Assembly: GCA_020184695.1 (NCBI GenBank)
Contig: JAANOX010000242.1
Span: forward strand, 62,001-126,000
Source: Histomonas meleagridis 2922-C6/04-290x
Taxonomy: Eukaryota; Protista; Parabasalia
Length of the DNA: 64,000 nt
Direction: 5' to 3'
Below, piece after piece: positions 5,009 to 63,213 of this stretch. The position numbers and the translations under genes were made by a program. Numbering within the stretch: position 1 is the first letter of the stretch; each line of letters begins with the position of its first letter. A model generated the notes under the pieces. That model had not been told where the DNA came from. It saw only the letters and a list, made by a program, of their open reading frames with translations, and made no database searches.

Positions 5009-6565
5009 TTATTGATTATTTATAATTCCTTTTCCTTTCTCAAGTAGAAATATTTTATAATCTGATGGACTGCATCCAGTGTTATCTATCCTCAGTTCCA
5101 ATTTATTTGCCATTATCAATGTCGACAAGAATATTCGCGACACTTCATGTTGTTCCAAGTCCGCCGTCAATTGTTTAAATGTAATTTGTCCGTCATGTGC
5201 CTCGAGCATATCCTTGATCCACTGCGAAACTTCATCCATTCGAAATGGTTTTCGCTTTTTCTCATTCTCTAAAACTGGTGTTAACTTACTTTCCCATTCA
5301 CTAAGTGTCGCAGCAACTTGACTTGTAACTACTTCTTGTTTACCCATTTGGATCATCTTTTGGATTGCGTTAATACATAGCTCTAAGTACGTTTGATTTC
5401 GACCTGGAATTGTTGAAAATGTTTGAGATGAATTTTCGTTAAAATCATCATCATCTGGTGGTGCATCAATTTGGTAATCATCTTCCATGTAAACATCTAT
5501 GTCATTAAGAACTTGATCTCGTCCACTTTCTTCGGGGACATTTAATGTGACTTCATGTTTCTTCTTTTGTATCTCAGTAAGATGACGAAATTGTTTGAGA
5601 TATGTAAAGAGTTCTTCAAATATATCACTATGGAATGGATGTCTTAATGAATTCTTTGATCGAATTTCCACATTTTCAAACGAATTAGGAAGATGGCGAA
5701 CGTTTAGCTTCTTAAACGGTTTCAATAGACTTGGAATTGATGAATCGGGATCAAGACTCTTGATTTGTTCGACTGATGGCGTTTCTTTTGTGTCTTCTTC
5801 ATCATCAGTACTAGGAATAGCTGGTTGAACAAATTCAGCTTCTGACTCTCCTTCTTCTGATTCTTTTTCTTTTTCTTCTTTTTGTTCAATTGGATTTTCT
5901 TGTTGTTCTTCTTCCTCAGGATTTATAATTGGTGGTGGGTTTGGAATTTCTTCATCACTATTAATATCAGAAAAATTCACAGGATCTTCATCACCAAAAT
6001 TGATGGATGGATCAAGTAAAATGACAGAGTACTTTTCATCTGGAATTGTGTTCACTCGAAATGAAGATAATTTATCATCATTCGTATTTGAATCTAAGGA
6101 ATGTAATAAACAAAATGGCATTTTTGGCATTGTTGTGATTTCAAGGCGTGGTCTATCTTCAATAAGTTGGGTTGATTCACATACATCTGGATCATCAATT
6201 GGAATTAATTTATCATCAACAACCCAATCAACAAACTTCCTCTTTCTTTTTTTCTTGTCTTTATCATCTGGATCAGCGTTTTCAGATGCCATTCTTGATA
6301 CTGCTAAATCATATAAATGTTTAACTTTTTTAGCGAAAATATTTGTTGTACCTTGGAGAAAAAGTCCAGCTTGAGAAAAATTGAGAATATCTGGATTGTA
6401 ATCATCTCCAATTTCAATATTTGCAATATTTTCAAGATAAGAATCTAGATAATCAGAAAGTGGAATATCCCAAACGGCAGATAGCTCACGGATTGGTCTA
6501 AGAATTTCTTGGAGCTTTTCTGTATCAAGAACTTGAGAATGATCTTCTTGACTGGAGATAGACAT
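5009..6565 (-). CDS. NCAPH2: Condensin II kleisin subunit H2
   Basis: N-terminal ILRPIRELSAVWDI...LNFSQAGLFLQGTTNIFAKKVKHLYDL and C-terminal WESKLTPVLENE..RKPF..EVSRIFLSTLIMAN match the CNDH2 N and C domains. Confidence 0.85.
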   Translation of the reverse strand: MSISSQEDHSQVLDTEKLQEILRPIRELSAVWDIPLSDYLDSYLENIANIEIGDDYNPDILNFSQAGLFLQGTTNIFAKKVKHLYDLAVSRMASENADPDDKDKKKRKRKFVDWVVDDKLIPIDDPDVCESTQLIEDRPRLEITTMPKMPFCLLHSLDSNTNDDKLSSFRVNTIPDEKYSVILLDPSINFGDEDPVNFSDINSDEEIPNPPPIINPEEEEQQENPIEQKEEKEKESEEGESEAEFVQPAIPSTDDEEDTKETPSVEQIKSLDPDSSIPSLLKPFKKLNVRHLPNSFENVEIRSKNSLRHPFHSDIFEELFTYLKQFRHLTEIQKKKHEVTLNVPEESGRDQVLNDIDVYMEDDYQIDAPPDDDDFNENSSQTFSTIPGRNQTYLELCINAIQKMIQMGKQEVVTSQVAATLSEWESKLTPVLENEKKRKPFRMDEVSQWIKDMLEAHDGQITFKQLTADLEQHEVSRIFLSTLIMANKLELRIDNTGCSPSDYKIFLLEKGKGIINNQ

Positions 6566-6746
6566 GAGAAAACCTGCTTAAAATAATAAACGGCATAGGA
6601 TTTAAAACGTTCAAAAAATCAATATTTTGAATTCGATTTAATCGTTTTCAAAAATGCCATTCAAAAAAAAATTCATTTCACATTTCTTGCATCCAAACAA
6701 ACACATTCAAAATAATAGCCCGTTTACTTCCTTTTCCAAATTAAAA

Positions 6747-8486
6747 ATGGAAAACACAGAACCAAATCCAGTTATTACAGATCCATCTATTGAAAAAAAT
6801 ATTGCTAGATGGAACAAATACGTAGGGAGGATAAAAACAGCATTCGAAAATGCAAATGCAGAAAATCTTAATGATGTAATTATTGACCTTTTTCGTTCAT
6901 ATTTAACTTGGACTTGGGCCGTTTTTTCCAGGGAATGTTTTAACATGAGTGCAGGTTCTAGAGATAATGCTCAATTATGTGCAACTATTCTTGCAATCAT
7001 AAATTCAAAAATTGGTGAAGTTGGACGAAATACTCTTATATATTCACTTTATCGTTTTAACCAAGGTATGAAAAACCACAAAACCAATGAAATACAAAAA
7101 GCTACTATTTTTCTTGGTGAATGTTATCGTCAACAATTAATCACATCAACCCTCATTAACGAGCTTATAATCACTCTTCTTAATGAAGGCCGTCGTTATT
7201 TACTTATTGTTATTAAGCTTCTTTGGAATGTAGCTCCACTTTTATATGATGACGATACATCCAGCCTTTCACTTATTTTTCAAACAGTTCTTAAGTATTC
7301 AGAAGATGACGAATTTGCCAGTCACATTGAGCGTCTAACTAAATGGCGTCAAAACAAATGGTGTTTTTATACAAAAGATGGCACTCGAATTCAATACTTC
7401 CGTATCCCCAAAAAGTACGACATCCTTGAAGGTGACATCATTACCCATGATAGTCTTAGTTTTGAAGATGTTCCAGAAGAAGATATTACCGAAAATTATA
7501 TTCAACCACATAAACTTGAAGTTTTCGACGAAATACGCGCTGAATACAAAGCCTTTCTCCAAGAGATCCTTCCTGATGAGGAAGAAGAAGAATCTGGGGA
7601 AAATGAACAATCAAATATATCTCTTGATTCTGCCTCTTTAAAGAGTACAGAGCAAGCCGTTGAAGCCAATAAACGAATGAAAGAAGAAAAAGAGTATCAG
7701 CGTCAAGTATATTTACATATTGTATCATCAGCGACATCTGCAGAAGCAGCGCATACTATCATTAAACTTCAACAGGAGAATCCAGGGTTTGACAACATCA
7801 TAGTTAACACGTGTATTAACTATGTTGGTATGGAAAAAACGTTTAATCGAAATCTTGGCACGATGATTCATTATCTTTGCAGTGTAAGTGACAACAACGT
7901 TTCCATTGTCGAGAAAGGATTTTACACGAGTTATACACAATGCCATACATATTCCATGCATCGAATTACTAATCTTGCAAACTTATATGCATATCTTTTG
8001 TCGCAAGATGCGATTTCATGGAAAGTATTAAGTATTGTTCGACTTACTGAAGATGAAACTAATTCTGCGCAACGTGTTTTCATTCGATTCCTAATGGAAG
8101 AACTTGCAAAGAACCTTTCATACGCGGGACTTTTAAAGAAACTCAATAATGATAACGTTGCGCAATGGACAAGCGGAATATTCCTTACTGATACACTTGA
8201 GCACGCGGAATTTGTCGTCATGTTCTTCACGCAAATTAAATTGGAGTTTCTGCTCGAGAAAGTGAATAAAGAAGTGATGAGAATGACCGAAGAAGTTAAC
8301 AGGAAACGCGAAGAAGAACTCGCGCTGTTAAGGAAACAAAACGTTGAAACAGTGGACGAAGTTCAAGTTGTTGATGATAATGATAATGACAATAAAATGG
8401 AAAACGTCGATGAGTTCTATGAAGAAATAGAAGTCGACGAGGGAAGAAGAAGACATCGTCATAGACACCATCATAGACATCATTGA
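6747..8486 (+). CDS. CWC22: Pre-mRNA splicing factor CWC22 (MIF4G + MA3); an upstream in-frame ATG at 6654 is also possible
   Basis: HRITNLANLYAYLLSQDAISWKVLSIVRLTEDETNSAQRVFIRFLMEEL matches the CWC22 MA3 region. Confidence 0.85.
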   Translation: MENTEPNPVITDPSIEKNIARWNKYVGRIKTAFENANAENLNDVIIDLFRSYLTWTWAVFSRECFNMSAGSRDNAQLCATILAIINSKIGEVGRNTLIYSLYRFNQGMKNHKTNEIQKATIFLGECYRQQLITSTLINELIITLLNEGRRYLLIVIKLLWNVAPLLYDDDTSSLSLIFQTVLKYSEDDEFASHIERLTKWRQNKWCFYTKDGTRIQYFRIPKKYDILEGDIITHDSLSFEDVPEEDITENYIQPHKLEVFDEIRAEYKAFLQEILPDEEEEESGENEQSNISLDSASLKSTEQAVEANKRMKEEKEYQRQVYLHIVSSATSAEAAHTIIKLQQENPGFDNIIVNTCINYVGMEKTFNRNLGTMIHYLCSVSDNNVSIVEKGFYTSYTQCHTYSMHRITNLANLYAYLLSQDAISWKVLSIVRLTEDETNSAQRVFIRFLMEELAKNLSYAGLLKKLNNDNVAQWTSGIFLTDTLEHAEFVVMFFTQIKLEFLLEKVNKEVMRMTEEVNRKREEELALLRKQNVETVDEVQVVDDNDNDNKMENVDEFYEEIEVDEGRRRHRHRHHHRHH

Positions 8487-9209: not shown

Positions 9210-12173
9210 ATGAAGACTGAAAGCACACGGACCCTTGAATCAGAAAATAAAGTAAATAATACATCAATTAATAACCAATCTGTACATATGCAAAAACTGA
9301 TTTCTTTAGAACAGATCATATTTAATCTTACAGAAAAAAACTTTGAGATTTCTGTTGCAAAAACAATGAATTTATTTGATAAAGATTTTCCTTTTACATT
9401 TAATTATTGTATAATTGTTTTAGTTTATTCAGCATTTTCATCTCAAAGAGAATCAATCCAAACATATTTCAATCATTTACAAGAAATTCAAACTAAAGAA
9501 GAAGCAATTCTTCACAACAATCCAAAAATTGTTGAAATTTTTACTAATTATATATCACAATTTAATACACAAGAGACATATTATATCATTGAAAAAATGA
9601 TTGAAAAAGAATTAATTAATATAAATATTACCAAAAACTTTAATACAAATTATTTTGCTCATTATAAAACTGAAGAAGAAAACAAGAAAAACGATTCTAA
9701 AGATTCATTTAATGAAGAATTTAAAAATAATTATGAAAAATTATCAAAGAATGATTGGGAACTTCATAAGCAATTAGTTAAAGAAGGAGTTAATCCGAAT
9801 GAAATATCAAAAATCATTCGAAATGATGATATAGAGAAACTTCAAGAAATATCAACACAAGAAGATTTCGATTTTAATCAAATCATTAAACCATCACTTT
9901 ATGAAAGATATTCATTTATTAACAAAGAAAATGTCACATTAATTGATTTTGCAGCATTTTTTGGAGCAATTCAATGTTTTAAATATTTATTAATGAATAA
10001 TGCAAAAGTTGAAAACACAGGTAAATATGCAATTGCAGGTGGAAATCTTGAAATTATTTATTTATGTGAACAAAATCATTCGACATTTGACGATGTTTAT
10101 GAAATAGCAATTAAATTTCATCGAAATGACATCTTTAAATATATTTATGAAAACAAAATCGAAAAATTAGATAAAAACAATCAACAACATTTATTAACAT
10201 ATGTAATTACAAATAAAATTCCATTTAAAAACTTTGGATATTATATAAGTAACACACAAACATTGACTGATATTAAATTCCAAGAACAAATTTATCATTG
10301 CATTAACATTGGTAATTATGAAATTCTTTCATTTTTAGAAGAAGAAATCAAATTCGATGAATATATAATTAATGTATCAGCGAAAACAGGTAATTTATAT
10401 CTTGTCGAATATTTTCTTGATCATAATCAAATTCCGAAAAACATTTTAGTTTTTGCATCAGAATCAGGAAATATTGAACTTGTTAAATATATTATTAAAC
10501 AAGAAGGGATTGATATTAATGCTAAAAATATTAATTTGTTTGTATTAAAATATGTTTTAATGTTTTGATATTTTAAAATAATATTTGGAATTTTATTAAA
10601 TTATTTAGAACATCATTAATGATAGCAACTATAAAAGGTTATATAGGAATTGTTCAATTTCTTATAGAACAAGAAGGAATTAACTTTAAACTAAAAGATA
10701 TTCGTATGTATTATAAAAAATTGATATTAAAATTTTTTGGGTTTTAATCAGAAATTTGGAATTTAATTGTTATATTTGATACCGCACTTTTATTGGCATA
10801 ACGCAATGATCAAACTGAAATATTTAAAATACTTCTTAAAAAAGAAGAAAACATTAATAATAAAAACATTGTTTCTGTTTATTTTATGTTTATTACAATA
10901 AATTGATATTTTAAATATGTATTAGGTAATTATTCTCATTATTTAAATCATTATTATATTATGAAACTGAAAAAAATCACATCGAAATGGTTAAATTACT
11001 TCTTGAACAAGAAAAAATTGATATTAATGTTAAAGATGTTAATTCGTTTTATTTAATATATATTTCAATAATTTACAATTTAAAAATAATATTTGGAAAT
11101 TATTTAAATTATTTAAAACACCACTTATTATAGCAGTTTCAAATAGATATTTTGAAATGGTTAAGTTACTTCTTGCGCAAGAAGGAATTGACATTAATGC
11201 TAAAGATATTTATTTGATTTATTTAATATTTATTTTAATAATTTTATGTTTAAAAATAATATTTGGAAAATATTTAAATTATTTGATACAACACTTATAT
11301 TAGTATCTCAATTTGGTTACATAGAAATAGTTAAATTACTTCTTGAACAAAAAGGAATTAATATTAATGCTAAAAATATTTATTTGTTTTATTTGACATT
11401 TATTTTAATAATTTGGGATTTCAAAATAATATTTGGAAATTATTTAAATTATTTAAAACAGCACTTATTATAGCATCTTCAAATGGTTATACAGAAATAG
11501 TTAAATTACTTCTTGAACAAAAAGGAATTGATATTAATGCTAAAGATATTTATTTGTTTTATTTAATATTTGTTTTAATAATTTATTATTTCAAAATAAT
11601 ATTTGGAAATTATTTAAATTATTTTATACAGCACTTATTATAGCATCTGAAATAGGTTATACAGAAATAGTTAAATTACTTCTTGAACAAGAAGGAATTG
11701 ATATTAATGCTAAAAATATTTATTTGTTTTATTTGATATTTATTTTAATAATTTGGGATTTCAAAATAATATTTGGAAATTATTTAAATTATTTTATACA
11801 CCACTTATTTATGCATCTTCAAATGGTCAAATAGAAATACTTAAAATACTTCTTGAACAAAAAGGAATTGATATTAATGCTAAAGATAAAATTTATTTTA
11901 ATAATTTTATATTTCAAAATAATATTTGGAAATTATTTAAATTATTTAATACAGCACTTATTTTGGCATCTGTAAAAGGTTATACAGAAATAGTTAAATT
12001 ACTTCTTGAACAAAAAGGAATTGATATTAATGCTAAAGATATTTATTTGTTTTAATAATTTTATATTTCAAAATAATATTTGGAAATTATTTAAATTATT
12101 TAAAACGGCACTTATGTTAGCATCGAGAGGAGGTCATACAGAAATAGTTAAATTATTAAATTCTCAAATCTAG
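9210..12173 (+). CDS. DUF3447-ankyrin gene; ten ankyrin modules each preceded by a 54-72-nt frame-disrupting spacer; one in-frame TAA at 10799-10801
   Basis: DUF3447-type core (IRNDDIEKLQ..TLIDFAAFFGAIQCFKYLL..AIAGGNLEII). Removing the spacers gives contiguous FxTALxxASxxGxxEIVKLLLEQKGIDINAKD repeats ending at TAG 12171-12173. Confidence 0.75.
10533..12098 (+). repeat. 170-bp periodic array (99-nt ankyrin module + ~71-nt AT-rich spacer), 10 spacers
   Basis: Spacers at 10533-10603, 10703-10774, 10871-10941, 11041-11111, 11211-11281, 11381-11451, 11551-11621, 11721-11791, 11891-11944 and 12044-12098, delimited between the I/V/K codon after NAKD/N and the TTT codon. Confidence 0.92.
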
Positions 12174-16057: not shown

Positions 16058-17614
16058 ATGGAGGGAAGTGGACCATCGCTTGGCCCTTATGCATTAATTG
16101 GGAAATTGGGCCAAGGTCAAAGTGGGCAGGTTAGACTTGCAATTAATGTTGAAACAAAACAAAAAGTCGCAATCAAAATCATTAACAAGGAAATATTTGC
16201 TTCAAAGCCAAATTTACAAGTGAAAGTACAGAGAGAAATTGCTTTGATGCATCTTGCAGATCACCCACATTTATTAAAACTTATCGATGTATTAGAATCT
16301 CCTCGACACCTTTATATTGTTGTTGAATATGCAGCTAAAGGTGAGTTGTTTAACTTCTTAGTTGAACACAAATCGTTGGATGAAAGTATGGCAATGAAAT
16401 TCTTCAGACAAATTATTTATGGGTTAGAATACCTTCATTCGCTTGGCATTTGTCATCGAGATTTAAAACTAGAAAACATCCTTTTGGATGAGAACCTAAA
16501 CATTAAAATTGCTGATTTCGGTTTTGCCAGATTTGTAAAATACAATATCGCAGAAACATCATGCGGATCACCACATTATGCAGCTCCAGAGGTCATTGGA
16601 GGTCATCCTTATGATGGCAGAATGGCTGACGTTTGGAGTTGTGGTGTAATTTTATATGCATTATTAGCAGTATGTTTTTTCAAGCACTGTATTTACGGTG
16701 CTTGTTTACATGAATCTAACACATAGGGTTATCTTCCATTTGATGATAAGACTATAAGAGGTCTTCTTACCAAAGTTAAAAGAGGCGTATATCAGATGCC
16801 GAACTTTTCAGAACCCGCCAAAAACTTCATTTCGAGGATCTTAGTTCTAGATCCAACAAAACGACTTACCATTCCTGCTATGAAGATGCATCCATTCTTT
16901 AGAATCAACCTCCCATCGGAGTACGTTATCCCGACACCGTTACCGATCCCGTCACTTTTGGAGCCGATAGACCCATCGACGGTTACCGCTGAAGTTCTTG
17001 ATGTGCTTCATAAGATTGGATACACTAATGATCAAGAACTATTCACCGATATAACGTCAAATCAACACTCGATGGCAAAGGTTTTCTACTATATGCTCAC
17101 AGCTAAACTTTCTCTGGAGCAAATTGATTGGAGCAAGTCAATGAGTAATACATTTAACCCTCAGATAGGAAATGACGATGTTTATGCTTTTGATGGCATG
17201 AATTCGTATTCAGGTTTGTATAATGATTCTTTTCAAGGATCAGTTCAATCAGCAGATTTATCGACTTCTGTAGCTCATCGTGTTGAATGGGCATTTACAG
17301 AAGAGCCTCGGTTAACAGAAGACATTCAAAAGTTTAACATTATTGCGAATATGTCTCGAGTATATGCACTTTTAGCTATGCAAAGGTTAATGAGGCAACT
17401 TGAAATGCAATGGTTTCATTCCGACGATTTTGTCATACTTGCTCGGAGGGAACAAACGTATATTCTCATTTCTTGTTTGGATATGATTGATGAGGAAAAA
17501 GTGACAATTCAAATTCAGCTCCTTAACGGTCCCAGCGAATTTTTCTCGCATATTTGTCATTGTGCAGATGAAATTATCAATCAAATGAATATGAGCTATT
17601 GGTATTGTAATTGA
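16058..17614 (+). CDS. CAMK-group (BRSK/Nim1/SNF1-like) Ser/Thr kinase, join(16058..16669,16727..17614)
   Basis: GQGQSG, VAIK, HRDLKLEN, DFG, CGSPHYAAPE. Splicing joins LYALLA to GYLPFDD and merges two track ORFs. Confidence 0.93.
16670..16726 (+). other. 57-nt spliceosomal intron of trichomonad type
   Basis: GTATGT donor and fused branch/acceptor TCTAACACATAG; removal restores kinase subdomain IX. Confidence 0.95.
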
Positions 17615-19232: not shown

Positions 19233-21413
19233 CTAATTATTTTGATCAATTCCTCTGTGTTCAAGAAGTAAATTAACTATTTCTGTATAACCATTTTTAA
19301 GTGCTTTCATAAGTGCTGTATAAAATAATTTAAATAATTTCCAAATATTATTTTGAAATCCCAAATTATTAAAATAAATCCAAAATAAAACAAATAAATA
19401 TCTTTAGCATTAATATCAATTCCTTTTTGTTCAAGAAGTAATTTGATTATTTCTGTATTACCTTTTTCTGATGCATAAATAAGTGCTGTTTTAAATAATT
19501 TAAATAATTTCCAAATATTATTTTGAAATAAAAAATTATTAAAATAAATATTAAATAAAACAAATAAAAATTTTTAGCATTAATATCAATTCCTTCTTGT
19601 TCAAGAAGTAATTTAACTATTTCTGTATAACCATTTTTAGATGCCAACATAAGTGCTGTATAAAATAATTTAAATAATTTCCAAATATTATTTTGAAATA
19701 CCAAATTATTAAAATAAATTCTAAACAAAACAAATAAATATCTTTAGCATTAATATCAATTCCTTCTTGTTCAAGAAGTAATTTAACCATTTCTGTGTGA
19801 CCATCTCTAGATGCATAAATAAGTGCTGTTACGAATAATTTAAATAATTTCCAAATATTATTTTGAAATAGAAAATTATTAATATAAATATTAAATAAAA
19901 CAAATAAATATCTTTAGCATTAATATCAATTCCTTTTTGTTCAAGAAGTATTTTAAGTATTTCTATTTGACCATTTGAAGATGCTAACATAAGTGCTGTT
20001 CTAAATAATTTAAATAATTTCCAAATATTATTTTGAAATAATAAATTATTAAAATAAATATAAAATAAAATAAACAAATATTTTTAACATTAATATTAAT
20101 TCCTTTTTGTTCAAGAAGTAATTTAACTATTTCTGTATGACCATTTGAAGATGCTATCATAAGTGCTGTATAAAATAATTTAAATAATTTCCAAATATTA
20201 TTTTGAAATCCCAAATTATTAAAATAAATATTAAATAAAACATATAAATATTTTTAGCATTAATATCAATTCCTTTTTGTTCAAGAATAAATTTTATTAA
20301 TTCGAAATTTCCTGACTCTGTTGCACAAGTTAAAGTTTTCTTTTGAAGTTTACAATCATTCATAAAATATTTCACTAAATTACCAATTTTTGCTGTTTCA
20401 TTAATGATATTTATATAAAATCTTGACTTTATATTATCTAATAAAGATACAAATAAAGAATAATTATCATTTTTAATACATTCAATTTCTAATTGAGTGA
20501 ATTCTTTGATTTTAATCGTGTTTTTCTTATAAAAATAATCAAAGACATCATTCCGATGAAATTCTAAAGCAATTTCATGAACTTGGTTAAAAGAACAATT
20601 ATTTTGTTCACATAAATGAATAATCTCTATATTTCCACCTGCAACTGCATATTTACCTATATTATTTAAATTGGAACCATTCATAAGTAAATATTTAAAA
20701 CATTTAACTGATCCAAAAAATGCTGCATATGCAATTAATGTAACATTTTCATTTTTTTGATTAACAAATGAAAACATTTCATAAAGTGATGGTTCAATTA
20801 TTTGATTAAAATCAAAATTATCTCGTGATGAAATTTCTTGAAGTTGATCAATATCATCATTACGAATCGCTTTAATAACAGGCATAGGATTAATTCCTTC
20901 TTTAATAAGTTGTTTATGTAGTTTCCAATTATCTTTTTTAAGATCTTCAATATCTATAAAGAAATTTAAATATGTTTTTTCAGAATTTCTAAATTGATTA
21001 ATTTTTGTTTCAGTAAAATAATGTGCAAAATATAAAGTGTTTTTTGTTTGAACTATATTAGAAGAAATATAATTTTCTTCAATCATGTTTTCTAGAAAAT
21101 AATATGATTCTTGTGAATTTAATTGAAGAAGAAAATGTGTAAAAGTTTCGATTATGTTATAATTTCCTTGAATTGATTCTTCTTTTGACTTCATTATATT
21201 TATGAATAATAAATATATTTTAATATCTTTCTTTTGAACTATAAAAGATTGATATATTAAACGTGATATGATAAGATTAGTAGAATATGGGAAATTAATA
21301 TCAAATAAATTCATAACACTTTCACCTTTTGATTCAATATTATCTTCATTTAAGTCAAAGATAATTGATTCAAGGTCTTTTAATAATGTAATATAGTTAT
21401 CTTTTTGGCTCAT
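19233..21413 (-). CDS. DUF3447-ankyrin gene with six stop-free ankyrin modules separated by six 71-nt spacers
   Basis: Intact 418-aa ORF into the first spacer. Spacers at 20176-20246, 20006-20076, 19836-19906, 19666-19736, 19496-19566 and 19326-19396; final TAG at 19233-19235. Confidence 0.8.
19326..20246 (-). repeat. Exact 170-bp periodic ankyrin-module/spacer array
   Basis: AAGTGCTGT recurs on the + strand at 19311, 19481, 19651, 19821, 19991 and 20161. Confidence 0.95.
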
Positions 21414-24370: not shown

Positions 24371-24589
24371 ATTTTGAGTTTTAACAAATGATAATAAAGA
24401 GGAACGTATATACAATTTTTTTAAAAAAAACAAGCTTTTTTGTTATTATTGATTGATCCAAATTATTTGTATCATACATGAACTTCATTTAGGAAAGTGG
24501 TTTTCATTGTACAAAACTTTTTAGCAACTAAAACATTTGCAGGAATATCTTTTGACTCATCATTTAAAAAACATAAAATAAATCTCTTG

Positions 24590-24965
24590 GAAAATTTCGA
24601 AGAATATTTGTGAACTTCATGAAAAGAAAACTGAAGATGCACATTCTCCATTTCAGATCAGAAATTGCGAGCACGGTTCAAAAATAATGTTAAAAAACTT
24701 CAAGAAATTTCATTACAAGAAAATTTTGATTTTAATCAAGTAGTAGTCTTCAGATTAAGAAAGTTGTTTAACTGTTAACTATGTTTTACTAACTGATTAT
24801 GCAGCATTTTTTGGATAAGTAGAATGTTTTAAATACTTAATGTGAATGCTGAATATGTATATTTGTTTCATATAAAATTTGGGAATTACCATAAAATATT
24901 TTGAACAGAACTTATAAGTATGCTTCACAAAAGGGATATACAGAAATTGCAAAATTGCTTTATAA
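24590..24965 (+). pseudogene. Collapsed DUF3447-ankyrin remnant with an internally deleted 39-nt spacer (24859-24897)
   Basis: KLQEISLQENFDFNQ, LTDYAAFFG*VECFKYL, VNAE-[TATTTGTTT...ATTTGGGAATTA...]-F*TEL and YASQKGYTEIAKLL. Confidence 0.7.
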
Positions 24966-25370
24966 CGGAGTTAGCCAAAAAGGAAATTTTAGCTTTTTTA
25001 AGCTATTTTAATTATATTTATTGAAACTTTTTATAGGGCAATGATACTTATGAAACAATGAATTTATTTTTGTTAACATCAATATTATGTATTTCTTTAT
25101 AAAAAACAAACAAAAAATCTTTTTAAATTGGTTTTGAAGTTTAATTTTATTAGATAATTGAATTCAATTCTGCTGAGGCAAAATCAACAATTTTCAATTT
25201 AAGATGTTCTTCTGCATAATTTACTCAATCATATTTATTCAATAACTTTATTATCATTTATTCCCAATTAATACTTTGTTTTCATTTTAATCTAGATAAT
25301 ATTAGATTATGTTTTCAAGAAAAATGCAAAAACTATTTGGAAGACAAAAAGTGCCAAAAACGTTTTTTTA

Positions 25371-39218: not shown

Positions 39219-39290
39219 CTCGCTGACCGGGAATCGAACCCGGATCACAGGAACGACAATCCTACATGATAACCATTACACTATCAGCGA
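39219..39290 (-). tRNA. tRNA-Asp(GTC)
   Basis: TCGCTGA/TCAGCGA acceptor stem, TAGGA-TTGTCGT-TCCTG anticodon arm, GGTTCGATTCC T-arm and a downstream T6 Pol III terminator. Confidence 0.95.
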
Positions 39291-39428: not shown

Positions 39429-40810
39429 TTTAACGAAAAAAACTGGTGTCTTAAAAATAATAAAGTTTTCTTCCTGCGCAGTTAGGTGACAAAATAATGG
39501 CGCCTTTTTTAATCAATCAAAAAGTTATTTGAATATGAACGATCACCACATTCAACACTTTTCAATACTTATAAATATATTAAAACGTTTTAATAATAAA
39601 CAATTGAATTAATGTGTTCATTTCTTCTTGAATGAGCCAAAAAGATAACTATATTACATTATTAAAAAGACCTTGAATCAATTATCTTTGACTTAAATGA
39701 AGATAATATTAAATCAAAAGTTGAAAGTGTTATGAATTTATTTGATATTAATTTCCCATATTCTACTAATCTTATCATATCACGTTTAATATATCAATTT
39801 TTTATAGTTCAAAAGAAAGATATTAAAATATAATTATTATTCATAAATATAATGAAGTCAAAAAGAAGAATCAATTCAAGGAAATTATAACATAATCGAA
39901 ACTTTTTACACATTTTTCTTCTTCAATTAAATTCACAAGAATCATATTATTTTCTAGAAAACATGATTGAAGAAAAATTATATTTCTTCTAATATAGTTC
40001 AAACAAAAAAACACTTTATATTTTTGCACATTATTTTACTGAAACAAAAAAATTAATCAATTTAGAAATTCTGAAAAAACATATTTAAATTTCTTTATAG
40101 ATATTGAAGATCTTAAAAAAGATAATTGGAAACTACATAAACAACTTATTAAAGAAGGAATTAATCCTATGCCTGTTATTAAAGCGATTCGTAATGATGA
40201 TATTGATCAACTTCAAGAAATTTCATCACGAGATAATTTTGATTTTAATCAAATAATTGAACCATCACTTTATGAAATGTTTTCATTTGTTAATCAAAAA
40301 AATGAAAATGTTACATTAATTGCATATGCAGCATTTTTTGGATCAGTTAAATGTTTTAAATATTTACTTATGAATGGTTCCAATTTAAATAATATAGGTA
40401 AATATGCAGTTGCAGGTGGAAATATAGAGATTATTCATTTATGTGAACAAAATAATTGTTCTTTTAACCAAGTTCATGAAATTGCTTTAGAATTTCATCG
40501 GAATGATGTCTTTGATTATTTTTATAAGAAAAACACGATTAAAATCAAAGAATTCACTCAATTAGAAATTGAATGTATTAAAAATGATAATTATTCTTTA
40601 TTTGTATCTTTATTAGATAATATAAAGTCAAGATTTTATATAAATATCATTAATGAAACAGCAAAAATTGGTAATATTTTTTTAGTGAAATATTTTATGA
40701 ATGATTGTAAACTTCAAAAGAAAACTTTAACTTGTGCAACAGAGTCAGGAAATTTCGAATTAATGAAATTTATTCTTAAACAAAAAGGAATTGATATTAA
40801 TGCTAAAAAT
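39429..40810 (+). repeat. Near-identical inverted duplicate of 20250-21617 (5' flank + DUF3447 region); weaker homology continues through the array and 3' flank to about 41470
   Basis: TTTAACGAAAAAA..CTGGTGTCTTAAAAATAATAAAGTTTTCTTCCTGCGCAGTTAGGTGACAAAATAATGGCGCC occurs at both loci; a 168-aa stretch of protein is identical. Confidence 0.93.
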
Positions 40811-41311
40811 ATTTATTTGTTTTATTTATAATTTATTTTAATAATTTGGTATTTCAAAATAATATTTGGAAATTATTTAAATTATTTTATACAGCACTTA
40901 TGATAGCATCTTCAAATGGTCATACAGAAATAGTTAAATTACTTCTTGAACAAAAAGGAATTGATATTAATGCTAAAGATATTTATTAGTTTTATTTAAT
41001 ATTTATTTTAATAATTTTTTATTTCAAAATAATATTTGGAAATTATTTAAATCATTTTATACAGCACTTATTTTAGCATCTTCAAATGGTTATACAGAAA
41101 TAGTTAAATTACTTCTTGAACAAAAAGGTATTGATATTAATGCTAAAGATATTTATTAGTTTTATTGAAAATTTATTTTAATAATTTCTTATTTCAAAAT
41201 AATATTTGGAAATTATTTAAATTATTTTATACAGCACTTATGATAGCATCTTCAAATGGTTATACAGAAATAGTTAAATTACTTCTTGAGCACCAAGAAA
41301 TTTCTAGATAG
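39632..41311 (+). pseudogene. Duplicate DUF3447-ankyrin copy with a disrupted 5' region and three 71-nt spacers (40814-40884, 40984-41054, 41154-41224)
   Basis: TAT>TAA at 39831 plus five homopolymer expansions relative to the 21413 copy; the ORF is intact from 40169 and the three modules are stop-free. Confidence 0.8.
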
Positions 41312-48986: not shown

Positions 48987-49154
48987 CTCTTTCTAAACGG
49001 CAATCCCATTGTAAAATATACGTTAGCAAATTCATGGTAAACTCACTTTCAAACAGCAAATCCACAGCGTCAATTTCACCACAAATCAAATCACAACTCA
49101 AATTTCTCTATAATCAAACAGCAGCTTGCACCAAATTCGCATTCACCAGCAGCC

Positions 49155-49497
49155 ACATAGTACTTACGCCACAAATATAATCACACAAACTTCTATAACC
49201 AAATTCACATTCACACAGTACTTACGCCACAAATATAATCACTCAAACTTCTATAACCAAATTCACATTCACACAGTACTTACGCCACAAATATAATCAC
49301 ACAAACTTCTATAACCAAATTCACATTCACACAGTACTTACGCCACAAATATAATCACACAAACTTCTATAACCAAATTCACATTCACACAGTACTTACG
49401 CCACAAATATAATCACTCAAACTTCTATAACCAAATTCACATTCACACAGTACTTACGCCACAAATATAATCACTCAAACTTCTATAACCAAATTCG
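49155..49497. repeat. Tandem array, 6 copies of a 58-bp C/A-rich unit, flanked by an 18-bp direct repeat
   Basis: AGTACTTACGCC recurs at 49159, 49217, 49275, 49333, 49391 and 49449; CCACAGCGTCAATTTCAC occurs at 49062 and 49503. Confidence 0.95.
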
Positions 49498-49641: not shown

Positions 49642-51066
49642 TTACTTTAAAGTTCTGTACATATGTTCGTCGTCCATTGTCATTTTCTTCTCTTTCTTTT
49701 TCTTTCTGTCCTTGTCCGTCCTCATTATCGGCAGCGTGTGCGCGTAGTTCTTTTTGGTATATCTGAATCCGATGAACGCCATATTAATTATTTGGTTTTG
49801 TTCTATTTCGGGCGTATCTTCGCGTGGGACAAACTCGTCGAAGTTCGAAGTGTCCCAATCGCCGTTTAACTTTGGGACTATTGGCGGTACCATTTCCCGA
49901 ATATGATCGAAATCGATTCCCTCAAAAAACGGGTGTTCTTTGATTTGTTCGTAGTTAAACCGATATTCCTTCGAACATAACAACCTTTGGATCAACTTAA
50001 TTGCGTTTAAGCTGACATTTGTATTTGCTGGAAATTTCAAAGTTTCTCTCCACTTGACAATATTTATCGCAGTTTCGCGTGCTGTGTTAGCCATGAATGG
50101 CGGAGACCCGAACAATACTTCATATAATATGATACCGAAACTCCAATAGTCCACACTTTGGTCATATGGCTTCTTCAGGAGTATTTCAGGAGCAATATAA
50201 TCCGGTGTTCCGACTGTCGAATATAATGCCTTCCGTTGGTTCATTGAATCCTTCCGTAAAAAGATGTCATTCGCGTACTTAACGTGCTGCATGTACGTAT
50301 CGGGATAACCGTCGGATTTTGCCGATAGACCAAAGTCGGTTAGTTTGATGTGCCCTGTTTTTGTGAACAACAAATTGTCGGGTTTAATGTCGCGGTGAAT
50401 GAAACCAGACTCATGTACGCTATGTATTGCTAACAATGTTTCCGCCAAATAAAATCGTGCTTCTGATTCAGTTAGGGTACCACGTTTGATTAACAAATTC
50501 ATCATATCTCCACCAGGTAAATATTCCATAACAAAATATAAGTGATTTTCATCTTGGAATGAATGAATTAATTCAACAATCCATGGATTAGTATTTGTAT
50601 CTGATGATGTTAAAACATCTCTCTCGGATATGGTGTTGTAGATTTGTTTCTTCGCGACAAGTTCACTTTTTTTTAATATCTTCATCGCATAATGATTCTT
50701 TGTAATTATGTCTTTCACTAGCCAAACATCAGCAAACGCACCACGTCCAATCTGTCGGATACGTCGGAATTGATCTTGACTAAGTTTCCTTCGTTGCTCC
50801 CTAAGAATATTTGACATCTTCTCCGCATATTCAATCTGTGATAGGCTGTTGTTGCTACGATTATCTGTCTGTTGTAAAGATTTACTTTTTTCTTCGTTCT
50901 CTTTGATGAGATTTTCATAATATGTTTCTATGAAATGTTTCACAAGCTCCACTTTGACTAACGTCTCTCGAGATGGATGAAACGGATCCGTTGAGACAGT
51001 AACCGGACCATGTTGAAGGATATTTTCTTGGTTAAATCGCCCAAAGAGTTGATCAAACCAAGTCAT
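49642..51066 (-). CDS. NDR/LATS-family AGC kinase
   Basis: IGRGAFADV, HRDIKPDNLL, DFGLS, YSTVGTPDYIAPE and the AGC C-terminal DTSNFDEF..AFIGFRY. Confidence 0.93.
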   Translation of the reverse strand: MTWFDQLFGRFNQENILQHGPVTVSTDPFHPSRETLVKVELVKHFIETYYENLIKENEEKSKSLQQTDNRSNNSLSQIEYAEKMSNILREQRRKLSQDQFRRIRQIGRGAFADVWLVKDIITKNHYAMKILKKSELVAKKQIYNTISERDVLTSSDTNTNPWIVELIHSFQDENHLYFVMEYLPGGDMMNLLIKRGTLTESEARFYLAETLLAIHSVHESGFIHRDIKPDNLLFTKTGHIKLTDFGLSAKSDGYPDTYMQHVKYANDIFLRKDSMNQRKALYSTVGTPDYIAPEILLKKPYDQSVDYWSFGIILYEVLFGSPPFMANTARETAINIVKWRETLKFPANTNVSLNAIKLIQRLLCSKEYRFNYEQIKEHPFFEGIDFDHIREMVPPIVPKLNGDWDTSNFDEFVPREDTPEIEQNQIINMAFIGFRYTKKNYAHTLPIMRTDKDRKKKKEKKMTMDDEHMYRTLK

Positions 51067-59654: not shown

Positions 59655-60961
59655 TCAAAAAATTACTTGGTTAATGAATTTTAAAATATATTTCATAACG
59701 TTGAAATTACCAATTGAAGAAGCTGAAATTATTGCAGGTTCAAAACAAACAAATAAATTCCAAACATTACATAGAAATATAACATATATAAAATAAACTT
59801 TAAAATAAAACAAAAAATATTAGTAGCTTTAATATCTATTTTAATTTTTTCAATTAAATACTTGAAAAACTCAAAATTTCTTGAATAAATGGAATTATAT
59901 AAAATATCTTTTGGTAATTGTTTTGTATGATAAAAATATAAAAACAAATACAAATTACCAATTTTTGCCGATTCATTTAATAAATCATCATTATATATTA
60001 AACCATTATCTATTAAAAATGCTAAAATTTCATAATTATAATATATTATACATTTCTTTCCATATTTATTAATATCTTCAGGTTTAAATATATTTGGCTT
60101 ATTCTCAAATAGATATCTAATTATATCATTTCGATGATATTCTATACATACTTCAATCGAATCATTAAAATCAACTTTTTCTTGTTCACATAAATGAATT
60201 ATCCCAAGATTTCCACCAGCAGCTGCATAAGGGCCTGTTGAACTTACATCAGAACCATTTAATAATAAATATTTAAAACATTTAATAGATCCAAAAAAAG
60301 CTGCATAATCTGCTAATGAAATTGGCTTTTCATTGACTAATGAAAATCGTTCATATAATGATGGATCAATCTTTTGATTAAAATCAAATTCATTTTGCGA
60401 TGTCATTTCTTGAAGTTTTTCAATGTTATCATTTCGAATTACTTTCGCTAATTCATTGGGATTTACACCTTCATGTATTAATTGTTTATGTAATGCCCAA
60501 TTGTCTTTTCTTAAGTTTTCAATTTTTCGACTATAGTCACCATATTTTTCATAATGTTCATCTGTTAAATAATGTACAAAATAACATGTTTTTAATGATT
60601 TGACATTTATGGGATCAATCATCTTTTCTTCTATCATCGCCTCTAAAAGATATCGTGATTCTTGTGGCTTATAAGCAAAATTTAGTGTGGAAAGAATATC
60701 ATCCCTAAAATCAAATACAATGTTTTTCTTTTCTTGAATGGATTTTAAAAAAGTTATCAGAACATTTGGTACTCCCTTTTGTGAAAAGAAGGAAGAAAAT
60801 ACTAATTGACATATAACATGAATAAATGTTTGTGGATTTTCATCATCAAAAATATTCAAAATATTTTCAACTGAAGCTTCAATATTTGATTCACACAAAT
60901 TATAGATTATGCTTTGTAGTGTTTCAAGGGTAGATAAATATTTTATATTATTTGTTTTCAT
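59655..60961 (-). CDS. DUF3447-ankyrin gene with one diverged 71-nt spacer (59745-59815) before a last ankyrin half-repeat
   Basis: DUF3447 core (IRNDNIEKLQ, LADYAAFFGSIKCFKYLL); after the spacer the -1 frame reads FEPAIISASSIGNFNVMKYILKF..TGA. Confidence 0.75.
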
Positions 60962-61442
60962 TTGATGAAAATTTTGTGTTTTGGCTTGGTGGTTCAATTG
61001 AATGCTATTGCACTGAAAAAGACCAAACCGATGGCCGTTTATTAATTTGTCTCAACAAATAAAAATCATTTTCCATTTTTGTTTTTCATGAAATTTTAAA
61101 TGAAATACTAATTCATTAATAGTTTGCACTAATTTTTTGAAATTAATTTCATTGCATCAAAAAAATATTTTGAAACATTAATGTCAACAAATTTTCATCA
61201 CTAACATCATAAAAATAAGGTTTACATATAATTTCGTGCTTTCTGGGGTAAGCGGTGCTTTTATTTTACATATATAAACGATGTAATTTGATTCTCTCCA
61301 TGTGCAAATAACATCTTTTTATATTGAATGAACTTTTCTCACTCTCTTTATTAATTAAAAACAAGTCTTATTGGAATTGTGAAAAAATCATGATTATTAT
61401 TTTATTCAAAATATAAAAATATTTGTATATCCTAAATTAGTA

Positions 61443-62078: not shown

Positions 62079-62971
62079 TTTTTTTCTTTTTTTCACTTCA
62101 CTTTTGAATTTTTTTTTAAATTGCTTAAATAAATCGAGAAAAACAAACGAGACCTAATTTTAGTATTATTGGAAGAAAAGATTTTCTCAATAATACAAAA
62201 ATTACAAATACGAAATACTTATCAACACCCTATTGTCGACAAAAAATTTTCCTCTAGGCCTTTATCGCAAAATGATATGCTCCAAGAGGTTTAAAATCAA
62301 AATAACACAAAATAAAAGCAACAACGAATATATCACATCAAAATCTTCAAGTTAATTAATTGCTGAATTTAATAAACCACGTATAATGTATAACACTAAA
62401 AAATTAACATGGAATCAAAAAAAATTCAGCAAGCTGAAAAAAGCATCCAATTTACGATAGGTAAAAAGTATACTAAAGATTTAAAGAAACTTAAAGAAAC
62501 ATATATACAAAGGTCAAATCAATCAGATGGCCTTCAATTTAATATTGTTAAAATGCGTGAAGAAGTAACTCGATTTGAAATAGAATGGAATACAGACGAA
62601 GCGACCAAAATTTTCCTAAATATCAAAATCCTTGAAAATGATATTACAAATAATTTAATATAATTTAATATTACAAATTCGAGAAGTTGAAGCTCGGAAA
62701 GACATTTTGGCTGAAGCACAAGAAAACAAAAACAATTTGCATAGAGAGATTGGATGATGAGATGGAAAAGTTGGAAAAGAATAAGAAAAAAGAACTTGGC
62801 CAATAAAGCAAAGAATCGAAGAAATACTCAAACAATTACAAGAACAACAAATATAATGATATCAGTAGTTGTTTGCTCATGAAAAAAACACCAACATGCG
62901 AAAAGATAAGTAATTTGAATGAACATTTATACAATTTATGATGTGTCAATATACATAAGTGCTTTCCAAAA

Positions 62972-63042
62972 TAATTTGAATAATTTCCAAATATTATTTT
63001 GAAAAATCAAATTATTAAAATCAATTTTAAATAAAACAAACA
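62972..63042 (-). other. Solo 71-nt ankyrin spacer with only a few codons of ankyrin flank
   Basis: TGTTTGTTTTATTTAAAATTGATTTTAATAATTTGATTTTTCAAAATAATATTTGGAAATTATTCAAATTA between NVEIYI and FWKALM. Confidence 0.85.
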
Positions 63043-63213
63043 AATATATATTTCAACATTTAAGTAAAAATATTTATATAGTTAATTAAACTTTTTATTT
63101 TTTATCATTATCATGGAAACCGTTAATATTTCAATACTTTAAATGGTCGGATATTTAAATTGAATCATTAAATGCTCAACCAAAAAATGCCTTCATAAGA
63201 TCATTTTTTTATT

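Follow-up and report, generated by a model that had tools for sequence, protein, structure and literature searches.

In a 64-kilobase (kb) stretch of DNA (contig JAANOX010000242.1, positions 62,001 to 126,000 of the forward strand; hereafter the window), genes for ankyrin-repeat proteins run into tandem arrays with a period of 170 nucleotides (nt). We found that the 80 nt between the D or N codon at the end of one repeat module and the T codon of the following T-A-L motif consist of four 20-nt sub-units, each of 17 + 3 nt. That is, four 17-nt elements alternate with four single codons (hereafter blocks), and the blocks joined to one another spell the beta-hairpin of an ankyrin repeat. We think it probable, though well short of certain, that the blocks are 3-nt micro-exons, and that the 17-nt elements flanking them, which lack GT-AG ends, are removed from RNA.

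Anatomy of the spacer

Tandem Repeats Finder placed the 170-nt period at 10471-12155 (10.1 copies), 19245-20294 (6.2 copies) and 40766-41289 (3.1 copies), in agreement with the arrays of 10, 6 and 3 units listed by a first-pass annotation of the window. Within the spacers it also detected a sub-period of 20 nt. We counted 18 occurrences of a 30-nt spacer core in the window, on the strands given by that annotation. Two of the single copies that it listed were recovered, one diverged (59.8 kb) and one a remnant (63.0 kb); the copy at 24.9 kb proved to be a decayed remnant.

The same annotation had described 99-nt modules, each one repeat long, separated by single 71-nt spacers that break the reading frame and that might be introns or recoding signals. 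We found the 71 nt to be 14 + 3 + 17 + 3 + 17 + 3 + 14 nt, a junction of four 17-nt elements split by single codons. Element 1 begins with the ATT that was read as the ‘I’ of the module, and element 4 ends with the TTT read as its ‘F’; the expected protein junction is D-x-x-G-x-T-A-L in a 34-residue repeat, not INAKDIF-x-TAL in a 33-residue one. By the annotation’s own definition, the spacers of array 1 measure 71, 72, 68, 71 (five times), 54 and 55 nt, and the 54-nt spacer reads through without a stop. In a worked junction, GAT is followed by ATTTATTTGTTTTATTT, AAT, ATTTGTTTTAATAATTT, ATT, ATTTCAAAATAATATTT, GGA, AATTATTTAAATTATTT, TAT and ACA, and the triplets joined alone give D-N-I-G-Y-T-A-L. 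All other junctions yielded similar textbook ankyrin hairpins (predicted examples are DNIGY-TAL, NDGGK-TAL and DNNGK-TAL), including the diverged junction at 10530-10609, that at 59.8 kb, and all four in L002, one of two comparison loci (L002, L003) taken from Histomonas meleagridis assembly GCA_020186115.1.

A fixed, unfitted 4 x (17 + 3) partition was applied to 31 distinct 80-nt junctions, and 17 nt fitted all 31 junctions of the 170-nt period. None of the 124 blocks was a stop codon, versus 49 of 124 triplets taken one base leftward. The G+C content was highest in the blocks (0.32, versus a mean of 0.09 in the elements). A GGN codon filled slot 3 in 25 of the 31 junctions, a pattern absent from all other registers. 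All four glycine codons (GGA, GGT, GGG, GGC) are represented in this slot, which is synonymous variation in a genome of 28-29% G+C.

Variation among near-identical spacers is almost confined to three triplets that lie 20 and 40 nt apart. Across 11 near-identical units of the window, diversity was 0.547 in blocks 1, 2 and 4, 0 in the glycine block, 0.040 in the 17-nt elements and 0.122 at the third codon positions of the modules. The blocks were 14 times more diverse than the elements (p = 1e-9), and the elements were ~3 times less diverse than third codon positions (p = 0.005). The triplets act like the hypervariable surface codons of ankyrin repeats, and the elements are more constrained than silent sites. 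If the scheme is confirmed, it may serve to generate variable binding surfaces, because the hypervariable codons are located at the repeat tips that bind ligands.

The consensus over 149 distinct elements was R-T-T-T-A...A-T-T-T. Position +1 was A in 60%, G in 34% and T in 5% of these (G in 2 of the 24 distinct elements of the window), position 14 was A in 81%, and the last base was T in 86%. A 3' AG was present in one of the 149, and the spacer has neither a conserved AG nor an ACTAAC-type motif, as the first-pass annotation had noted. Among lengths of 11 to 25 nt, 17 nt performed best and accounted for 47 of 53 junction lengths. Distances between modules (113, 116, 153, 170, 173, 190 and 230 nt) equal 90 + 17a + 3b, and elements are gained or lost singly and exactly, as in 153-nt units from which one element is absent. 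The five TAA triplets of the consensus spacer are all in the one frame that neither the upstream nor the downstream module uses; therefore an unprocessed transcript would be read for ~30 codons as a hydrophobic tail (IYLFYLIFILII...). We also considered this zero-frame tail as a C-terminal membrane anchor and rejected it, as it is too short at gene 1 and its translation differs widely among copies (12 to ~30 residues).

Coding capacity of modules and blocks

The Pfam Ank profile aligned to each module at positions 4-32 of 33; this leaves out four residues, which the blocks supply. The hairpin glycine is presumably position 2 of the profile, going by the Pfam consensus. With the x-x-G-x contributed by the blocks, the modules have the features of the ankyrin repeat (PF00023), namely a unit of 33-34 residues, the G-x-T-P/A-L-H/x motif and a helix pair. 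Uninterrupted ankyrin proteins of the same sub-type in other organisms have the same 30 + 4 layout. A search of 1.8 billion protein representatives with a profile of the modules returned generic giant ankyrin proteins only.

When the 17-mers were taken out of the sequence, gene 2 became a 590-amino acid (aa) open reading frame (ORF) that holds seven ankyrin repeats and ends at a natural stop, gene 3 a clean ORF of 312 aa, and the Histomonas loci stop-free stretches of 332 and 642 aa. The clean multi-ankyrin ORF proposed earlier for array 1 was not obtained, owing to an in-frame TAA in module 2 (10799-10801). Twenty-nine consecutive Histomonas modules, at a mean divergence of 25% from the consensus, contained no stop. 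A neutral simulation predicted that 20.3 of these modules would have stops, and none of 2000 runs produced a stop-free outcome; neutral decay with stops at the expected rate, which would have pointed to an amplified pseudogenic minisatellite, is not what these modules display. To judge from their sequence, the ankyrin tails look functional.

Histomonas and metagenome relatives

A protein search with the gene 1 ORF found only paralogues of at most 58% identity, which end at the first hairpin. The closest named proteins were Histomonas meleagridis paralogues (50-63% identity), and metagenome proteins were similarly close. The window’s own proteins were absent from the protein collection, an exact look-up of gene 1 included, and a DNA polymerase A had no match above 54% identity; the DNA was therefore taken to come from a relative of Histomonas and not from that assembly. 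Locus L002 has the same 170-nt period with spacers much more diverged than those of the window, whereas the spacer of a metagenome contig (L001) is nearly identical to the window’s. Two loci of a third relative (L004, L005) contained no ankyrin modules.

The Histomonas hairpins range from 0 to 7 elements; those that are interrupted hold 1, 3, 4, 5 or 7, always between codons. At L002 135-275 there are seven single-codon blocks (A-G-W-E-A-N-F), each after a 17-mer, and at 365-465 there are five (R-I-E-Y-F), likewise each after a 17-mer; the hairpin loop appears to grow by addition of 20-nt units. At 6097-7614 of the same locus, the last module continues straight into a 505-aa ORF, which is annotated as a separate gene whose ATG start falls within element 4. 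This tail had no match in protein collections. The public Histomonas annotation stops ankyrin genes at the first hairpin, and L003 (11267-21266) holds ~48 ankyrin modules over ~8 kb without any gene call.

RNA and DNA contigs

The read evidence consisted of assembled contigs from three runs that we took as RNA, an assignment that is a guess, and from one DNA run (X1). The array draws contigs from paralogues that must number in the thousands. The best-supported joints in the RNA runs link the end of one module to the start of the next through triplets such as GAT-GAT-GGA, AAA-GAT-GGA-AAA or AAA-CTT-GGA-ATA, that is, through a contiguous D-x-x-G-x-T-A-L. Fourteen of these joints had a depth of 0 in X1. 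No contiguous hairpin of this family exists in the DNA of the window, where the parse gave 17 interrupted junctions along with a few that are diverged, and the contigs of the DNA run contain spacer sequence. At position 10917, inside an element, the RNA depths were 0, 5 and 19 versus a DNA depth of 18685; the RNA-to-DNA depth ratio at ordinary genes was 0.02-0.18. An unrelated 775-nt joint was present in the DNA run and the RNA runs alike. The joints of the RNA runs fit removal of the elements from RNA.

The ordinary intron type exists in this genome, because a canonical intron splits the domain of a protein kinase gene (16058-17614). It is the genuine 57-nt trichomonad intron that the first-pass annotation had recognized at 16670. 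A scan of the window for the branch motif (A/T)CTAAC fused to the 3' end matched this intron only (16715-16726). The exon 2 boundary (16727) is the exact start of one RNA contig; a second spans the intron unspliced. The spliced joint of the kinase intron was not among the joints listed, in a table flooded by ankyrin paralogues.

Proposed mechanism and alternatives

Under the reading that we favor, each ankyrin beta-hairpin (D-x-x-G-x before T-A-L) would be encoded by four separate single codons, every one of them preceded by a T-rich element positioned exactly between codons. The elements would be taken out of the transcript one at a time, leaving an mRNA for a normal 34-residue repeat, and peptides from downstream modules or hairpins (e.g., NNGGYTALMIASSNGHTEIVK) are predicted. 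Removal at the level of RNA is something we infer. The agent may be a length-measuring derivative of the spliceosome, and the 20-nt unit of element plus codon would spread by tandem duplication, adding or removing loop residues at the binding surface. The earlier interpretation survives in part: the tails look functional, and their interruption, without GT-AG ends or branch motif, is of an undescribed kind. The anatomy given to that interruption did not hold.

If our reading is confirmed, no nuclear genome would hold a shorter class of excised segments lacking GT-AG ends. The blocks would also be the first tandem single-codon exons, and they occur in great numbers. Either a spliceosome would be working without AG on a 17-nt ruler, or another system would be cutting and joining mRNAs. 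The gene models of Histomonas meleagridis, a serious poultry pathogen, and of its relatives would then be truncated, with the ankyrin genes cut at the first hairpin.

Several observations weigh against this reading. No RNA contig could be assigned to the locus under study, the contiguous forms all come from paralogues, and the contiguous joints match only 19-26 nt on their shorter side. The presumed RNA runs cover intergenic DNA at low depth, and the depth of 0 for 14 contiguous joints in DNA run X1 comes from counts that were incomplete. We know of no machinery that cuts out 17-nt segments whose position +1 is A or G and whose position -1 is T, and 3-nt exons between 17-nt segments look sterically difficult. 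The parser used for variable junctions scored 192 of 198 elements as 17 nt and no block as a stop, counts that are partly built in because it favors 17 nt and penalizes stop blocks; the fixed-partition test is free of this problem. Constraint on framework codons is moderate, with a ratio of nonsynonymous to synonymous polymorphism (pN/pS) of 0.74 in the window and 0.58 in Histomonas (1.55 and 0.84, respectively, at surface codons), a modest level that is as expected between repeats of one protein. Lastly, gene 1 is blocked by the stop in module 2 and by an 18-nt element, and because this block lies at the second unit, array 1 may be decaying.

Removal from RNA need not involve the spliceosome. 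A dedicated excision system could use sequence and length to recognize the 17-nt U-rich elements and could rejoin the single codons, and 20-nt units that are duplicated, lost or optionally skipped would then vary the binding loops across probably thousands of repeats; we hold this as a tentative alternative. More doubtful is the idea that the arrays form a pseudogenic minisatellite, with tails that are decaying and untranslated because the real stop lies in the first spacer. The first ORF of gene 1 does stop inside element 2 of hairpin 1 (10566-10568), module 2 has its own stop, overall pN/pS of the window copies is ~1, and the Histomonas annotation ends its genes at this place. Against such decay stand the stop-free Histomonas modules, the synonymous glycine codons at one fixed slot, the diversity of the blocks relative to the neighboring elements, which neutral decay could not have generated, and the 505-aa ORF that leads straight out of the last module of L002. 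The coding evidence from blocks and modules, on the other hand, asks only that the elements be untranslated, not that they be excised, and it would equally accommodate 17-mers that stay in the mRNA and are skipped by the ribosome, a 17-nt bypass four times per repeat whose constant length would suit a ribosome-sized ruler. This too is unlikely, and slightly more so: hairpin codons are contiguous in the RNA contigs, no stable RNA hairpin is predicted (folding z-scores of -0.45 to +0.24), matched take-off and landing codons are absent because the flanking blocks are hypervariable, and ~24 to 40 consecutive events per protein would demand near-perfect efficiency.

The single 71-nt non-canonical intron per repeat of the first-pass annotation restores the frame and a 33-aa period. 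We give it very little credence, as its product, INAKDIF-x-TAL, has a hairpin without glycine, and it leaves unexplained the hypervariable triplets and invariant GGA inside the ‘intron’ as well as the 17-nt steps of spacer length; the RNA contigs have x-x-G-x between D and T, not I-F-x. A -1 ribosomal frameshift once per unit at a TTTAAAT heptamer has about the lowest standing of the readings we weighed. It was attractive at first, since neither the upstream nor the downstream frame is closed by a stop within the consensus spacer, and the zero frame contains T-TTA-AAT; translation of the spacer would give residues such as NNIWKLFKLF. Spacers of 72, 54 and 55 nt would need shifts of 0 or +1, however, the zero-frame stop precedes the opening of the downstream frame in hairpin 1 of array 1 and in 2 of 4 L002 junctions, and ten serial shifts would leave almost no product. 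Recoding by frameshift, one of the options raised at first, is excluded because there are spacers of 54, 55, 68 and 72 nt and Histomonas junctions without frame overlap. Another of those options, a joint at the DNA level, is unlikely because the contigs of the DNA run carry the spacer. Removal of the elements from DNA in expressing nuclei, like that of the eliminated sequences of ciliates, is as improbable as the frameshift. The excision units are exact and length-defined, and contiguous forms were seen in no runs but the RNA ones, where some DNA may be present as well; against this, no TA-TA ends lie at the required spacing, and the listed contiguous joints were not seen in X1. Nuclear dualism is not known in parabasalids.

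Other candidate mechanisms were tried and set aside. The GT...AG pairs of the consensus, checked by hand, span 60, 72, 76 and 88 nt, and only a length of 2 mod 3 restores the frame. For a U12-type AT-AC intron (ATATCCTT at the 5' end, TCCTTAAC as branch site, AC at the 3' end), the consensus contains no in-frame AT...AC pair and the elements have almost no C. RNA structure, whether a bulge-helix-bulge or pairing of the ends, was not indicated in six spacers (z ~0).

Inventory of the window

The window has a G+C content of 29.4%, is dense in genes and uses the standard code. An ORF of the trichomonad DUF3447-plus-ankyrin type precedes each array (Table 1). In array 1, the elements of hairpin 1 lie at 10530-46, 10550-66, 10570-86 and 10590-606, and its blocks (AAA, GAT, GGA, AGA) give N-K-D-G-R-T-S-L. 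Hairpin 2 is 81 nt long, so one of its elements must be 18 nt. Hairpin 3 (77 nt) has lost exactly one block, block 1, leaving two elements abutting, and its block 3 is GGT. Hairpin 7 is directly followed by a 90-nt module (T...D, 11628-11717), the three remaining elements of hairpin 9 read through in frame, and the last module terminates at a stop at 12171-12173.

According to the parse, the first hairpin of gene 2 has blocks AAT-GGG-GGA-TAT between AAT and ACA. Genes 2 and 3 are near-identical on opposite strands, with six and three hairpins, respectively, and the pair looks like a recent segmental duplication. The diverged hairpin at 59739-59818 has four 17-mers and blocks AAA, TAT, GGA and GAA (N-K-Y-G-E-P-A-I). 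At 24480-25010 there is a decayed DUF3447-ankyrin pseudogene with broken frames, whose last hairpin has an 18-nt element and TGA as its fourth block.

Elsewhere in the window, a 52-nt tandem repeat (1223-1958; 14 copies, 98% identity) is nested in a 209-nt period, and a 58-nt tandem repeat (49154-49496; 5.9 copies, 98% identity) lies just upstream of a minus-strand protein kinase gene (49642-51066). An Rfam search of the window gave one match only, a tRNA gene on the minus strand (39219-39290).

Table 1. Coordinates of the interrupted ankyrin genes, their hairpins and the canonical intron in the window.
Feature	Position	Strand	Basis
Gene 1, uninterrupted part: DUF3447 and first ankyrin helix pair, ending ...GIDINAKN	9210..10529	+	ORF; Pfam Ank_2/DUF3447 matches
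Array 1, hairpin 1	10530..10609	+	fixed 4 x (17 + 3) partition; parser
Array 1, two damaged units (hairpins 2 and 3)	10700..10947	+	manual parse
Array 1, hairpin 4: blocks AAT, ACA, GGA, AAA (D-N-T-G-K-T-P-L)	11038..11117	+	
Array 1, hairpin 7 (typical): element 1 11548-11564, AAT, element 2 11568-11584, ATT, element 3 11588-11604, GGA 11605-11607, element 4 11608-11624, TAT	11548..11627	+	
Array 1, hairpin 9 (63 nt): element 1 exactly missing, GAT adjoins AAA	11888..11950	+	
Array 1, hairpin 10 (64 nt): one 21-nt element, a fusion of elements 1 and 2; block 1 lost	12041..12104	+	
Canonical trichomonad intron, 57 nt, GTATGT...TCTAACACATAG, in protein kinase gene	16670..16726	+	
Gene 2: ORF, then six hairpins (24 elements)	19236..21413	-	
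Gene 3: 5'-truncated near-copy of gene 2, three hairpins (12 elements)	40169..41308	+	
Gene with one diverged hairpin, then last module	59658..60997	-	
Orphan hairpin remnant with no gene before it; blocks AAA, GAT, GGA, TGG	62966..63045	-	

Comparison with known systems

Full-text literature searches found no description of such elements. Translational bypassing, known from phage T4 gene 60 and from the byp elements of Magnusiomyces mitochondria, also involves short non-coding inserts within an ORF, without intron ends and spread over many genes. It depends on a hairpin and on take-off and landing codons that match, and the ankyrin elements have neither; the RNA evidence points to removal. 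The nonconventional introns of euglenids likewise lack GT-AG ends and are abundant in nuclear genes, but they vary in length and are defined by pairing of their ends, whereas no significant structure was predicted at the ankyrin spacers. The micro-exons of animals and plants (3-30 nt) can be as small as one codon and alter surface loops of proteins. These occur singly between long canonical introns, however, whereas the ankyrin blocks stand four in tandem at 17-nt intervals in each repeat of a large gene family. Ultra-short introns occur in Stentor coeruleus (15-16 nt) and in the Bigelowiella nucleomorph (18-21 nt), and these share with the elements an extreme shortness and a tightly fixed length, so that most positions are constrained. 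Unlike the elements, they keep GT-AG ends and are separated by ordinary exons rather than single codons.

Trichomonad introns have been described as GT-AG and 23 nt or longer, with at most one per gene in T. vaginalis and two in three genes of T. stableri (PMC12316389); the Histomonas genome paper also gives at most one intron per gene. As a class, the elements do not have the usual trichomonad features, namely a 5' GT (GYAYGY or GTWYWD), a 3' AG, the fused (A/T)CTAAC branch motif and a length of at least 23 nt. The type B introns (23-28 nt) of Trichomonas vaginalis and T. stableri are similarly very short, T-rich and of near-fixed length, and they occur in the same phylum and also in repeat-protein genes (PMC12316389). 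The elements depart from them in being 17 nt, in having A at +1 in most cases, in ending in TTT and not AG, in having no TCTAAC...AACAG motif, and in numbering four per repeat and up to seven per hairpin. The 5' hexamer RTTTAT of the elements nevertheless fits GTWYWD if position 1 is G; many Histomonas elements start GTTTAT or GTTTTA, and many elements hold a TAAT or TAAAT that resembles the CTAAC branch site. The elements seem to resemble very short type B introns in which the GT and CAG ends would have decayed to AT and TTT. Because many Histomonas elements fit the type B 5' motif and many elements hold a TAAT-like center, descent from very short spliceosomal introns would be the likeliest origin, with ends that may have drifted to A...TTT and a fixed length that may have replaced AG as the 3' signal.

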